Origin: Octopus bimaculoides
Lineage: Eukaryota
Reading direction: 5' to 3'
DNA length: 64,000 nucleotides
Assembly: GCF_001194135.2 (NCBI RefSeq)
Contig: NC_068982.1
Coordinates: forward strand, 111,393,965 to 111,457,964
A program made the position numbers and the translations under genes. Positions 703 through 12,863 of this stretch are shown here, one piece after another. Each line of letters begins with the position of its first letter. Position 1 is the first letter of the stretch. The notes under the pieces were generated by a model. It was not told the DNA's origin and ran no database searches. It was given only the letters and a program-made list of their open reading frames with translations.

Positions 703-809
703 CTGCTCATGGTACTATATATGGCAAACATATGTTTGTGTAAAAATGAGTCTTCAAGGTCACGCAGCATCATACCATCTAAAGGAATTAAATATTTCTT
801 GTCCTTCTC
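703..809 (-). CDS. DNM1: Dynamin exon 14B, a paralogous copy of exon 14A and candidate mutually exclusive exon: EKDKKYLIPLDGMMLRDLEDSFLHKHMFAIYSTMS(R)
   Basis: 107 nt open frame, ctcctattttctcctggtgtgttggctgtag|GAG...AGCAG|gtaggt. Same phases as 14A (0 in, 2 out). 15 of 37 aligned residues are identical to 14A with one 1-codon gap. Confidence 0.85.
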
Positions 810-3800
810 CTACAGCCAACACACCAGGAGAAAATAGGAGGCACAGATCAAATGACTAGTTTACCAGAACATGATTAATAAATATAGCAGACAGAAGATT
901 CATTGTTTGTTAGAACATGAATGTATGAGTACATGTTGTAGATTATGAGGAGTGAGTGTAAGTGAAGCTTTAAGATGTTTTAGGTCAGCACAAGAAAATA
1001 ATTTACAACCCTCTCTATGAATTTATCAGGTCTAATCCTAGAAAACTAAGTAAATAAAGGATTTTTAAGCAAAGACTAGTTAGCTGATTTTCTTCAAGAT
1101 ACTAAACCATTATCAAAACAAAAGAAACCAATGTGACAAACTTCTGGGGAACAAAATTAATTTGAAAAATTATTTGTTTTATACTTGGTATTCCAGACAC
1201 ACAAAAGATTATATAGTTTGTTGAAAGGAATATAGTTTAATGGCAAGAAATAAAATTACTAGGATACACACACAACAACACCACCACACACACACACACA
1301 CACACACAGAAAAGAATTTATATTACATCTTTGAAGTAATGAGCTATCTCTATCATCTGCCAGTAAAATGTTTAAAACTTTAAAATATTCCATTTTGTGC
1401 AGAAGAGAAGCAAGTAATTTTTAAGATATCACATTATATCTGACATCCCTATAAAATACACTCAGCAATGGTTTAATTTAGAACACAACACATACCACAC
1501 AGCTTCTCAGGAATGATGTTCAGCAAATTTTTGACTTTTTGAGCAAAATTTCTTCTGGTTTATAATTACTAAGAACTTCACAAATATGTTTCCAAAACAA
1601 ACACACAGGTCATTTGTCTGGCATACTATACAATATTAGATAGTCAAAATATCTTTGTCCATATTTTTACCGTTTCTTTTGGAGCTTATCACTTCACACC
1701 TAGAAAACCAAAACATATCTCATTCAATATTTTAATTATTCCAATGTCCACTTACACAACAAAAATGTCTAAACTGACTGTTGATCTTACATCACAATAT
1801 TTTTCTTTTATGTAAAAATTGCATACAAACAGAAAATAAACTGTAAAAATTGAAATAAAAATACAGAATAGACATACTACCTAACTGAATAAAAGATAAA
1901 GTAATAGCAAGTTTTTGCTATAACATCAGAGCAGCATCACTTTGCAAAACGTCAATACCAAACAATATCTAAAACAGGTAGACTGTTTTAGGAGTTTGAC
2001 TTCATAAAAGCTTGACATAAGAAGAATGCTTAATGGTAAGACTATTATAACAGTGGAATGGCAATCTAAGAACATCTTACATTCCATATTGACTTTGATG
2101 TTATTTCATATATGTGAAAAAGACATTTTTTTAATGCCAAAATTTAGATTTTGATTTAAAGATTAAACAATTTCTTTTGTAACTATAACTGCCACTCCAT
2201 CAGTTACAACAACAAGGATTTCAGTTGATCCAATTAATGGAACAATGTGCTCATGAAATTAATGTGCAAGTGGCTGAGCACTCCACAGACATGCATACCC
2301 TTAACATAGTTCTCGGGGAGATTCAGCAAGACACAATGTGACAAGGCTGTCCCTTTGAAATACAGGTATTACTCATTTATGCCAGCTGAATGAACTGGAG
2401 CAATGTGAAATAAAGTGTCTTGCTCAAGGACACAATGCACCACCAGGTATCAAACTCATACCTTTACAAACTTGAGCTGAATACCCTAAACACTTAGCCA
2501 CAGGCCCTCACAACAATTTATTATATATAAATTATTATAACTACACTGTAGGCTTACTTGATCTTTTCATAAAATTATAGAGTCAAAAATATATAAATAT
2601 TTTAGATATTTATAGAACTTTTTGTTTTGTTTAAATGAATCTGATCACATTCTGTAAGCTATGTTAACTCTTCTTTTCTTTACACAGGAAAACTCTGGAA
2701 GACAGTTTAGGCAAAGAAAATTGTCTATTTGTATTATCTAAATTTAGAATCCTCAACTTCTTGAGAAAATTTCTCCAATATTTAAACACTATGTTGTTCT
2801 CATATATTTTTCCTTTGTTCTCATTCCAGTATCGTTATCTAAATGTACATATATAAATGCTTCATGACAACCCATTTTAGACAAGTCAGAAATATTTGAT
2901 ACGATAATTAGCATAAACTCTACCTGGTTAATAATTTATCATAATAGTTAATGTTTATGTCAACACAGATATCATATGGATTTGGAGTTGTGATGTTTAT
3001 ACTACAATAACACTGTAAGTGATATAGTTCCACAGGGAAATCAAACTAGAGATGATCAAGACACCACAGAAATGCTCAAAAGAAGAGACAGAGAATTCTT
3101 TTATTTCTTTGAAAAGAAGTGTAAAATCCTAGTTAATTTCACTGAATATATTAAAGGTACTTATTTTATCAACACCTGATGTATTTTAAAGTAGATATGG
3201 TAAAAATGAATTAAATAACATTTCACATCCTTAAATATATATATATATATATANNNNNNNNNNNNNNNNNNNNNNNNNNNNNNNNNNNNNNNNNNNNNNN
3301 NNNNNNNNNNNNNNNNNNNNNNNNNNNNNNNNNNNNNNNNNNNNNNNNNNNNNNNNNNNNNNNNNNNNNNNNNNNNNNNNNNNNNNNNNNNNNATATAAA
3401 TTTACTTATTTGAAAGGGGGCACATTCACAAATTATATAGAGGTAATCACACCCAGATAAAAAGATAATTTACAAATCATTCAAAGTGAGAATACTTCAA
3501 ATTCAGGCAAATAAATACACTTTATAGTTTCTAACAAAATGACAATTTTTATTTATTCAAGTTATTAAAACATAAAAATGTAGATAATAACAATTAAAGA
3601 GTGAGTCATTATTAGATAATTTACTTTCAAATTTCTAGGTACTTTATTAGTTCAAACACACACACACACACATTTTGGTGGAGGTTTTACACAAACAGAA
3701 TTAAAAGTGAGAGGTAACTTTTTCTAAATACACATTTCAAAAGTTAATTAGAGATTGAAATTTGAGCTACAATTTTACACCATTTTTCTTCTTTTTTTTT

Positions 3801-4136
3801 CTATTTTCTGTATTGCATCTAGCTTCCAGAAAGTGTACTTTCTAATTATAATAACACTGTGTTATAAACTTTATAAATATCTAATATACAAGGAAATTAA
3901 TTCAGTTTAGCAGTCACACACACACACACACACATATAAATATGCACATATTAAAACTCCTTATTTATAGGTGCAGGGAAAGGTGTATGATTAAGAAGTT
4001 CACTCCATAACAACGTAGTTTATGTTCAGCTCCACTGTAGAACACCCTGGGCAAGTGTCTTCTACTATACCTCAAATCAACCAACATCTCTTGTGATTGA
4101 ATTCAATAGACAGGAATTTTACAAAGCCTATCATAT

Positions 4137-4242
4137 ATGTGTGTGTGTGTGTGTGTGTGTGTGTGTGTGTGTGTGTGTGTGTGTGTGTGTGTGTGTGTGT
4201 GTGTGTGTGTGTGTGTGTGTGTGTGTGTGTGTGTATATATAT
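4137..4242. repeat. (TG)n microsatellite of about 95 bp plus a short (TA)n
   Basis: Read directly. Explains ORFs 4072..4377, 4093..4344 and 4097..4297. Confidence 0.99.
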
Positions 4243-11010: not shown

Positions 11011-12621
11011 TAGGAAAATAAAAGTTATTCATGAGTCTTCAAACTCAAAATGGTTACTATTAATTGTGCTCTGTAGAGTGTAACATATCTATGCTAGTGG
11101 GACAATTATTTCTACAGAGAAAGCTATACTATTTAGGATATTTCATAACTTTGGACTACCTCATATCATTTGCAAGACTTGAAAAATCCCTTTTGTAACA
11201 GAGAATACATGGTTTAACTCTTACAGATATTTTGTGCTCTGCTTCTGAGCAAAGCACATAACTTTGCCTCCCTCAATGTACATACTTTCTCATATATAGC
11301 ATTATATGAATACTAGAGTGTTATTTGTCAAATGATGAGTAACTTAAGAAGTATACTTTTACCACTATGGGTAATATCAAGAAATATGACATCCATACAA
11401 TAAGAATTTAACTTTTTATCAAATTCCTTGGTGCTTATACGAAATGATGAAACAAATTCTAGTTTACATAAAAATAATATTTATTACCTTAAAATCTCAT
11501 AACTCCTCCCTTAACTACTCGGTCATTTAAACCTCCCTTCTGCCTCCTACCACCAAGTCTTGTATATGCACTCATCCTGCACCTCTTATAGTAACTGTCT
11601 CTCTATATCACTCATTTACTTTCTCTCTCCTTCACTTGCTATACAAACAGGACTGGAGAAATCAACCAACCAGCATTTATATTTTGTACAGATAATTTTT
11701 TTCTGCTCCTACACTTGCCTTAAAATTGTTTATAAACATTCTGTTAAATATATTTATATCTCTTTTTTATTATTATTATTCTGAGTGTAAAACGTGTTTT
11801 ATATACATCACACAGTACATAGTAAATAAGACTCTCAGATATGTAGATGTTAATGTATATGCTTAATAATTACCCCTAACCCTTGAACCAACATACATAC
11901 TATAGACTGAAATATAACAAATGTGTCAAAATAATGTATGTTTAATTAGTAATTGTACTTGACTATGACTATTAGTAATCGTATTTGACTGTGACATACA
12001 TCTCTGAGAACTTGTAAGCATGATCTGAAAATTAACATCAACAAGATAGAAGTACACATTCAGACAAACTGCAAATCTTCAAGGATAGAAGTTATCAAAA
12101 TATGTAGTTAAAATGTAGACAAACATGGCCCAGTTTCCATATTTTGCTCATGCAATCAGCCGTAATGCTCATTTGGATGAAGAGATATTAAGAGGAAGAC
12201 GAAAGCAATCACAGTATATTGAAAACTACCTCACCATATTTGGAAAGAGTAATTGTACCTTCACCCTTGCTGAATAGGGTGTGGTATCACAGATGTAAAT
12301 AAGTAGGGGAAAATTCAGGACTACATCATACAAAGCCACAGAATTGTCATGAAGATATCTTGACTTGATTAAGTCAAAGACCACTGCTATCCAGAATAAA
12401 GCTAGACTTCAACATGAAAGAGATTTTGATCCAACAACATTCCTGATTTAAGAAACTCTGAAAGAAAGAAAATCCATTTGTTTTTCCTTTAATCTGCAAG
12501 ATAATTTTGAATGTTGATATAAGTAAATGAGGTTAGATAAATGTCAAGGTGATGTTAATAAAGATAACTCATGTCATTTATATTCAAGCAGAAAATGTTC
12601 CGGTGAAGTAGCAATGTGCAA

Positions 12622-12683
12622 CATGCAAGACAAAGCAATAATTATATGCAGCAGGAGTATGTCAGTAAAAGCATGCAGTTAGT
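12622..12683 (-). promoter_or_regulatory. Candidate intronic splicing enhancer cluster downstream of exon 14A (2x TGCATG, 1x ACTAAC)
   Basis: On the transcribed strand, ACTAAC (12678-12683) directly abuts TGCATG (12672-12677), with a second TGCATG at 12622-12627. All lie 70-132 nt from the 14A donor. Confidence 0.55.
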
Positions 12684-12753
12684 AAGAACTCAGCAACAGC
12701 CAATGATTGTATGCAGACTAAAATTTCTACTGAAACAATGCACAACCAGATAC

Positions 12754-12863
12754 CTATTTTCAGAAGAGAACAGGGCAAATGTAGGACGTCTCGACAATAT
12801 TCCGGCTTCGACATCACGAACTTTCAAGTTGTCCACTGGGAGCATATATTTCTTTTCTTTTTC
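12754..12863 (-). CDS. DNM1: Dynamin exon 14A (PH domain middle): [36 protein letters not shown](R)
   Basis: 110 nt, ttcctttgtag|GAA...AATAG|gtatct. Phase 0 in, phase 2 out; matches vertebrate [19 protein letters not shown]. Not present in the ORF track. Confidence 0.95.

Follow-up and report, generated by a model that had tools for sequence, protein, structure and literature searches.

Can a single invertebrate dynamin gene exchange the membrane-contacting part of its PH domain by choosing between two versions of one exon? This question is raised by a stretch of Octopus bimaculoides DNA (contig NC_068982.1, positions 111,393,965 to 111,457,964; 64,000 nucleotides, all of which was analysed and is called the window below), in which a classical dynamin gene on the minus strand carries two homologous forms of exon 14, designated 14A and 14B. 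The joined exon peptides of this gene matched Dynamin_N (PF00350, 3.6e-38) and Dynamin_M (PF01031, 4.4e-102) in Pfam. On the evidence of sequence comparison, we consider it likely that the two exons form a mutually exclusive pair and arose when one PH exon of a single classical dynamin gene was duplicated in tandem long ago. Splicing of 14B itself in this species appears about equally likely; the leading alternative is that 14B survives as a well-preserved relic. The exons concerned are as follows.

12863-12754, minus strand: exon 14A ('copy 1' type), 110 nucleotides (nt), AG/GT ends (tttgtag/GAAAAAGAA...GAAAATAG/gtatct), 36 residues plus a split R
809-703, minus strand: exon 14B, the candidate alternative exon, 107 nt, AG/GT ends (ggctgtag/GAGAAGGAC...ATGAGCAG/gtaggt), peptide EKDKKYLIPLDGMMLRDLEDSFLHKHMFAIYSTMS(R)
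19972-19859, minus strand: exon 13, the opening third of the PH domain, 114 nt, phase 0 in and out

Reading both exons together with exon 13 confirmed the positions, the AG/GT ends and the phases (0 in, 2 out) that had been given in a preliminary description of this locus. Exon 14A begins with GAAAAAG and ends with AATAG, and 14B begins with GAGAAGG and ends with AGCAG; both are open and 3n+2 long. The splice sites of 14B are intact, with a near-consensus strong donor (AG/GTAGGT) and a pyrimidine-rich acceptor. When 14A is joined to 14B, the sequence reads AGG AGA AGG ACA AGA AAT ATT TAA, the codon string reported before, and stops 7 codons into 14B. The acceptor of exon 15 was read in a related locus, L005 (tag/G AAT GTT TAT AAG), where the first base of the exon is the third of a codon; if neither copy is used the frame shifts, with a stop after 3 codons in L005. 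Because inclusion of both copies leads to a stop and omission of both to a frameshift, an mRNA encodes dynamin only if it contains a single copy. The earlier argument that exactly one of the two exons must be used thus holds, given the 3n+2 lengths and the start of exon 15 in L005.

The homology of the two exons was evident at the peptide level. They share 15 of 37 residues, the count given previously, which comprises 14 whole codons and the common split Arg codon. Their global BLOSUM62 score was 82, compared with −15 ± 8 for 2000 shuffles (z = 11.9), and tblastn of either peptide against the six frames of the window detected only the other copy (E = 4e-7; next match E > 0.1). Mutually exclusive exons have been recognized as same-strand neighbours of similar length with equal phases and mutual homology (PMC3923563). 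14A and 14B share a strand, have no other dynamin-like coding sequence between them, measure 110 and 107 nt, have equal phases and are homologous.

We compared the nucleotide sequences of the two exons to estimate the age of the duplication. They are identical at 59 of 110 positions (54%), similarity between their 300-nt flanks did not rise above that of shuffles, and the proportion of synonymous differences (pS) was 0.88, that is, saturated, against a nonsynonymous proportion (pN) of 0.36. The duplication therefore appears to be ancient, and the low pN relative to pS, together with the unrelated flanks, agrees with the original suggestion of an old duplication kept under selection. Compared with eight other copies from several genomes, 14B showed identities of 0.54-0.71, 0.66-0.74 and 0.31-0.46 at codon positions 1, 2 and 3, respectively. 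Scored with a profile of 63 dynamin exon-14 segments, 14B reached 48.3 bits and its shuffles at most 5.4, while 14A scored 77.7 and the copies of relatives 60-86. By these measures, 14B clearly has the character of constrained PH-domain coding sequence and is also the most divergent copy.

Exon 13 is the shared upstream partner of 14A and 14B and was found by tblastn in a single copy in the window. Its borders read ccag/GTAATACGT...GATGAAGAG/gtatgt, its last codon is whole, and it aligns with residues 520-557 of human dynamin-1. The PH-domain model PF00169 (cut-off 25.1) scored exon 13 plus 14B at 34.2 bits (model positions 1-75) and exon 13 plus 14A at 27.6; the best matches among solved structures were the PH domains of dynamin-2, -1 and -3 (E = 9e-32 to 3e-28). 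The window holds the first two thirds of the PH domain, and the GED and the proline-rich C-terminus are located beyond position 1. The remainder of the gene in the window lies upstream.

21521..44825, minus strand: upstream exons of the same gene, encoding the GTPase and middle/stalk domains, each found once by self-tblastn

Self-tblastn of the 64-kb window detected no second copy of any of eleven other dynamin exons, and the duplication is therefore confined to exon 14 in this gene. A second duplicated exon elsewhere in the gene was rejected on this basis, all eleven other exons in the window being single-copy. The stalk exon equivalent to the vertebrate 10a/10b exons (24935-24798, minus strand) is also single-copy in the window, and identity of the pair with vertebrate 10a/10b was ruled out.

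The intron that separates the two copies was then read for other coding sequence.

810..12753, minus strand: intron separating 14A from 14B, 11.9 kb, without other dynamin-like coding sequence
3254-3393, no strand: assembly gap of 140 N (length estimated) inside the 14A-14B intron

Queried by tblastn with exons 13 and 15, both exon-14 copies and the three copy types seen in relatives, the window yielded neither a second exon 13 nor a third exon 14, and nothing resembling exon 15. The preliminary description had likewise seen neither exon 13 nor exon 15 between the copies, and this is borne out over 11.8 kb of readable intron, the 140-N gap being the only unread part. As no exon 15 was found in the window, it must be located below position 1. 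The gap had been pointed to as a place where further exons might be hidden. It is intronic and touches neither exon: in gene orientation, the 14A donor lies 9.4 kb upstream of it and the 14B acceptor 2.4 kb downstream. TA repeat flanks it on both sides (...aaatttatat-N140-tatatatatatatatatatattt), and it interrupts no reading frame. It has the look of a microsatellite left unresolved in the assembly, and there is no sign of an exon concealed in it. The count of two copies may be too low, since relatives carry three and the window stops 702 nt beyond 14B.

Are such arrays present in other genomes? Loci of relatives were large ENA contigs fetched through ORFs (open reading frames) of exon 13, the protein collections consisting mostly of short ORFs from raw contigs. 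Among the five ENA contigs read, three (L001, L003 and L004) contain three copies of exon 14, L002 contains two before the contig ends, and L009 contains copy 1 alone within a 10-kb flank. The tandem copies of L001 and L003 measure 110, 113 and 113 nt, are 0.6-0.8 kb apart and begin 4-5 kb downstream of exon 13. L004 belongs to a different lineage, with an exon 13 that is 87% identical to that of the window; its first two copies are 113 nt each, and the locus ends inside the third. AG precedes and GT follows every complete copy, each of which is 3n+2 long. The copies of L001, L002 and L003 are 82-94% identical, compared with 59-80% for the adjacent 200-nt intron flanks, and the ratio of nonsynonymous to synonymous rates (dN/dS) among them was 0.12-0.53, based on just 2-12 substitutions per class. 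The homologous cluster of other genomes thus appears to be under purifying selection. In other lineages (L005, L006/L007, L056 and the insect-like loci L062-L065) there is only one exon 14, which either precedes exon 15 or is fused to it.

The copies of the window were compared with those of the arrays. 14A was closest to copy 1 of L004 (66-68% identity, 56% bootstrap). 14B has 36 residues, a length that appears equal to that of L004 copy 3 as far as the locus end allows, and the two align without gaps over 32 residues. The donor hexamer of 14B, GTAGGT, is the copy-3 donor of L001 (16094) and L003 (16654); donors of the copy-1 types are weaker (GTAACA, GTAACG, and GTATCT in 14A), and those of copy 2 are GTGGGG or GTGGGA. 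There is a weak hint here that 14B may correspond to copy 3, the last of the cluster.

Two records suggested how the copies of relatives are used. The first is P0256 (a cluster-mate of one of the exon-13 proteins through which loci were fetched), a 251-residue intronless ORF in which middle-domain exons and exon 13 run into EKEKRYMLPLDGLRQSDTETSGIF. Its locus, L008 (positions 6090-7040 of ENA ERZ25069865 ctg5918, a 2.8-Mb contig), is a 5'-truncated processed dynamin retropseudogene that is intronless over at least six exon junctions and has frameshifts near 6756 and 6810. Exon 13 of this retrocopy (6568-6681) is identical to that of L002 at 112 of 114 nt and abuts a copy-3-type exon (6682-6795) with 92 of 113 matches to copy 3 of L003 and 77 to copy 2; no match to copy 1 was found. 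Directly after the copy-3-type exon comes exon 15 (NVYKD...). The retrocopy is the fossil of an mRNA from which copies 1 and 2 had been skipped. At its junction between copy 3 and exon 15 (6790-6805), an extra CAG gives ...PDTSRNVYKD instead of ...PDTRNVYKD, which could reflect a tandem NAGNAG acceptor of exon 15 or a later insertion.

The second record is L014, a metagenome contig of 3010 nt (JGI Ga0210350_1012344) that contains, without introns, a 5' untranslated region, a complete dynamin ORF (MSGNIGMEQL... to ...IPTRPN*) and a 3' untranslated region. The ORF includes exon 15, the GED and the proline-rich tail, and its protein is 85% identical to the exons of the window, so that the contig can serve as a reference for gene parts beyond the window. 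Between exons 13 and 15 lies an exon 14 of the copy-2 type, with 38 residues, an extra loop residue and a basic K-x-K-K pattern; this mRNA-like contig uses that exon alone. L008 and L014 are two independent records, and they show that the distal copies are used one at a time in relatives.

No copy-1 transcript was recovered from relatives, and searches for 14B itself in the protein collections returned other sequences. A word-index search with exon 13 plus 14B gave 28 matches, none of which was 14B-like. None of the best 120 matches of a profile of all copies with their flanks was 14A, 14B or copy 1; one of these 120, P0109, was distantly copy-3-like. A HMMER search with 14B alone against 1.84 billion representatives yielded no 14B orthologue, the best real matches being single-copy exon-14 ORFs of other animals, 69% identical. 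The giant proteins P0263 (7917 amino acids) and P0264 (6328 amino acids) matched residues 10-31 of 14B in 17-23 short stretches (E = 1e-31 and 2e-14), and these matches look repeat-driven and unrelated to dynamin.

We next asked which part of the protein would be exchanged. By alignment to solved structures, exon 13 plus 14B maps to residues 520-593 of human dynamin-1, and exon 14 corresponds to residues 558-594. The membrane loops of dynamin are delimited as VL1 (531-537), VL2 (554-560), VL4 (576-583) and VL3 (590-600), and VL4 inserts into membranes (PMC10089193). Exon 14 therefore spans the last three residues of VL2, the lipid-contact residues K561 and K562, strands beta4 to beta6, the whole of VL4 and the first five residues of VL3. 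The KEKKY contact region and the loop equivalent to vertebrate EKGFMSSKH had been assigned to this exon beforehand, in agreement with the presence of K561/K562 and VL4 (576-583) in the segment. Both 14A and 14B retain K559, K561, K562, Y563, D568, R573, D574, E576 and a hydrophobic VL4 tip; the lysines and a hydrophobic pair at tip positions 579/580 are kept in every copy. The loops compare as follows.

Human dynamin-1: tip F-M; VL4 EKGFMSSK; net charge +1
14A: tip I-L; VL4 EAGILSRR; net charge +1
14B: tip F-L; VL4 EDSFL-HK, one residue shorter; net charge −1, His not counted
Copy 1 of relatives: tip F-F
Copy 2 of relatives: tip F-I; VL4 one residue longer
Copy 3 of relatives: tip I-F; VL4 one residue longer

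The earlier remark that the two exons carry differently charged loops agrees with these VL4 charges of +1 for 14A and −1 (without His) for 14B. The encoded half of VL3 also differs, being SSENR in 14A and STMSR in 14B. In vertebrate dynamin, F579A and the neuropathy (Charcot-Marie-Tooth) mutation M580T make membrane binding and fission acutely curvature-sensitive (PMC10089193).

Possible regulatory signals were searched for near the copies.

12622..12677, minus strand: two UGCAUG (Rbfox-type) motifs, +77 and +127 nt from the 14A donor

In L001, L002 and L003, copy 1 is likewise followed by UGCAUG at +65 to +68, which in L001 and L003 falls in a conserved block of the intron; in these two loci the motif also occurs some 108 nt ahead of copy 3. 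The motif is not enriched in the window as a whole (52 found, 50.6 expected). Its placement is a lead that would fit an Rbfox-type factor promoting copy 1 or 14A and repressing the last copy. RNA pairing of the docking-site/selector kind gave no convincing candidate, an inverted-repeat scan of window positions 1-20100 being swamped by (TA)n and (CA)n microsatellites. Intron blocks at least 90% identical between L001 and L003 adjoin the alternative exons (L001 14462-14527, 15266-15319, 15870-15909 and 16544-16592, with the corresponding positions of L003). Within them, a GGUGUAU that follows copy 1 has complements in AUACACC, beyond copy 2, and in UACACC, ahead of copy 3. A complementarity of 6-8 bp is too short to be claimed as a docking-site/selector system.

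Several observations weigh against the mutually exclusive use of 14A and 14B. The protein collections contained no dynamin fragment of the window species or a close relative spanning 14A/14B. Exon 15 lies outside the window, so that the junction from 14B to exon 15 is a predicted one. 14B is the most divergent copy (48 bits, compared with 60-86 for all others), its second-codon-position identity is lower than that of 14A, and constraint on it may be relaxed. In a neighbour-joining tree of 23 exon peptides it was unplaced between copy 2 and copy 3 and grouped weakly, with no support, with single-copy 'HMFAIY' types. The two exons are 12 kb apart, compared with 0.6-5.5 kb between the copies of relatives, and no UGCAUG occurs within 1.4 kb of 14B. 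The substitution counts behind the dN/dS values of relatives are small, as stated above.

Some of these points would be accommodated if the ancestral multi-copy cluster worked and, in this lineage, 14A alone were spliced, leaving 14B as an unused pseudo-exon that has not yet acquired a disabling mutation. The low profile score of 14B, its unusual residues (MM at 570-571 and STMS at 590-593), its 12-kb distance from 14A and the lack of a nearby Rbfox-type motif all speak for such a relic. Loss of a copy may have occurred, as there are two copies here and three in relatives, and a 36-codon open frame in AT-rich DNA is not very improbable by itself. However, both splice sites of 14B are intact, and it keeps every dynamin-invariant position, including the hydrophobic VL4 tip. 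Synonymous sites are saturated at a pN of 0.36, conservation is seen at first and second codon positions with third positions close to random, and the PH-domain model scores higher with 14B than with 14A. We regard a relic as unlikely, although it is the strongest competitor of the mutually exclusive pair.

It is very improbable that 14B lies outside this transcription unit, either as part of a partial second dynamin copy (exon 14 onwards) or through a scaffold misjoin at 3254-3393. In favour of such an arrangement, an assembly gap with an estimated length lies between the copies, and the window stops 702 nt after 14B. Against it, the gap lies within a TA microsatellite, no exon 15 occurs in the 11.8 kb of readable intervening sequence, and four contigs of other genomes contain a head-to-tail, one-strand exon-14 array with no exon 15 between the copies. 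Nucleotide identity of 54% and unrelated flanks also argue against a haplotype artefact and against a recent segmental duplication, and both were rejected.

Finally, 14B could be a poison exon that, when included with 14A, introduces the premature stop (TAA after 7 codons) and lowers dynamin output through nonsense-mediated decay, regulated unproductive splicing being common in general, but this is very improbable, since a poison exon needs no protein-level conservation, yet 14B is PH-compatible with coding-type conservation of codon positions, and the distal copies of relatives stand alone between exons 13 and 15 in the retrocopy and the mRNA-like contig.

On the mutually exclusive reading, both exons descend from one PH-domain exon through an ancient tandem duplication, and each mRNA would take one of them. 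The two isoforms would share the GTPase, the stalk and the phosphoinositide lysines and may differ in the depth, charge and curvature dependence of membrane insertion; such a difference is suggested by the effect of VL4-tip mutation on curvature sensitivity and fission in vertebrate dynamin. Exon choice is probably tissue-regulated. Since UGCAUG lies downstream of 14A at a position conserved beside copy 1 of relatives, Rbfox-type enhancement of 14A in neurons or muscle may be involved. Mis-spliced combinations would be removed by nonsense-mediated decay.

A broader proposal is plausible, and we put it forward only tentatively. The PH-exon cluster may be an old three-member, tissue-regulated switch of several invertebrate lineages, probably molluscs and allies, that is kept here as at least 14A and 14B. 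It would yield dynamins differing only in VL4 and VL3, in parallel to Dyn1, Dyn2 and Dyn3, with different curvature dependence, and UGCAUG would drive use of copy 1 or 14A in neurons or muscle.

Invertebrates are commonly described as having one dynamin, with one isoform at the vertebrate alternative site (PMC2916854). This view leaves open how a single gene serves both fast synaptic recycling and general endocytosis. Mutagenesis of the PH loops has shown that they determine how the membrane is entered, how sensitive dynamin is to curvature and how efficient fission is, and M580T lies in one of these loops (PMC10089193). If an exon encoding the K561/K562 region, VL4 and half of VL3 is swapped, this would amount to a natural experiment on these same mutagenesis-defined membrane loops, and 14A and 14B would be ready-made, evolution-tested loop replacements that can be compared in existing liposome and nanotube assays. 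Specialists would find here a useful natural variation of the membrane-inserting loops that can be tested, although the kind of phenomenon is unsurprising. Gene models are also affected, as an annotation with one copy only, or with both, would give a wrong or truncated protein.

Other features of the locus were observed along the way. In the window (19973-21520) and in L004 (1-256), ...KRKLGNQ and VIRRGW (exon 13) are parted by an intron, and the two parts are fused in one exon in L001-L003, L005 and L009; this intron is a gain or loss difference among cluster-carrying lineages. Three more assembly gaps lie in dynamin introns, at 14470-14503 (between exon 13 and 14A), 34110-34119 and 39969-40441. 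Much of the long introns is occupied by an interspersed repeat with many copies on both strands and an open frame reading ...PSGxPVLxQxVQPMxxQHGKWTLNDDDDDD....

31596-31916, 39603-39847, 54866-55108, 16879-17084, 9267-9386 and 41145-41359, both strands: examples of interspersed repeat copies

How does the candidate pair compare with known systems? Clusters of tandem-duplicated, mutually exclusive exons are a well-known phenomenon (PMC3923563). In the literature searched, we found no description of alternative PH-domain exons of dynamin or shibire, and automated public gene models may already list such isoforms. The preliminary description had named exons 10a/10b in the stalk as the known vertebrate pair, which is correct for DNM1 and DNM2, where this mutually exclusive pair lies in the middle/stalk domain (PMC2916854, PMC9652393), and the equivalent exon is single-copy here. 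The 10a/10b pair has been reported absent from invertebrate dynamin, with one isoform at that site (PMC2916854), and the single exon in the window agrees with this report. The likeness is close: in the same family, one internal coding exon is duplicated in tandem, the copies are used exclusively, and one segment of about 40 residues is swapped (PMC2916854, PMC9652393). The difference is in the place and number of copies, as 10a/10b encode stalk residues 399-444 and comprise two copies, whereas exon 14 encodes PH residues of about 558-594 and has three copies in relatives. For the regulation of 10a/10b, competing RNA pairing has been proposed (Suyama 2013, as cited in PMC3923563).

Vertebrate dynamins also have the cassette exons 12b and 13b and alternative C-termini; DNM2 exon 12b is muscle-specific, and its authors propose an effect on the auto-inhibitory interface between the PH domain and the stalk (PMC9652393). 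These exons resemble the candidate pair in that alternative splicing alters the neighbourhood of the PH domain. They differ from it in being short in-frame insertions that are included or skipped, leaving the loops VL2 to VL4 unchanged.

A further parallel is offered by Dyn1, Dyn2 and Dyn3, which diversify one shared fission machine. VL3 residue 600 contributes to the difference between Dyn1 and Dyn2. Fission by Dyn2 is more steeply curvature-dependent than that by Dyn1, and VL4 mutations affect Dyn2 more severely (PMC10089193). Vertebrates achieve this diversity with separate genes, whereas here one gene would swap one exon. Finally, the classical invertebrate clusters of Dscam1, Mhc and 14-3-3zeta share with exon 14 the arrangement of tandem homologous exons of conserved length and phase, one per transcript (PMC3923563, PMC8791459). 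They employ docking-site/selector pairing, whereas in the dynamin gene the 3n+2 length alone makes the other combinations non-coding.

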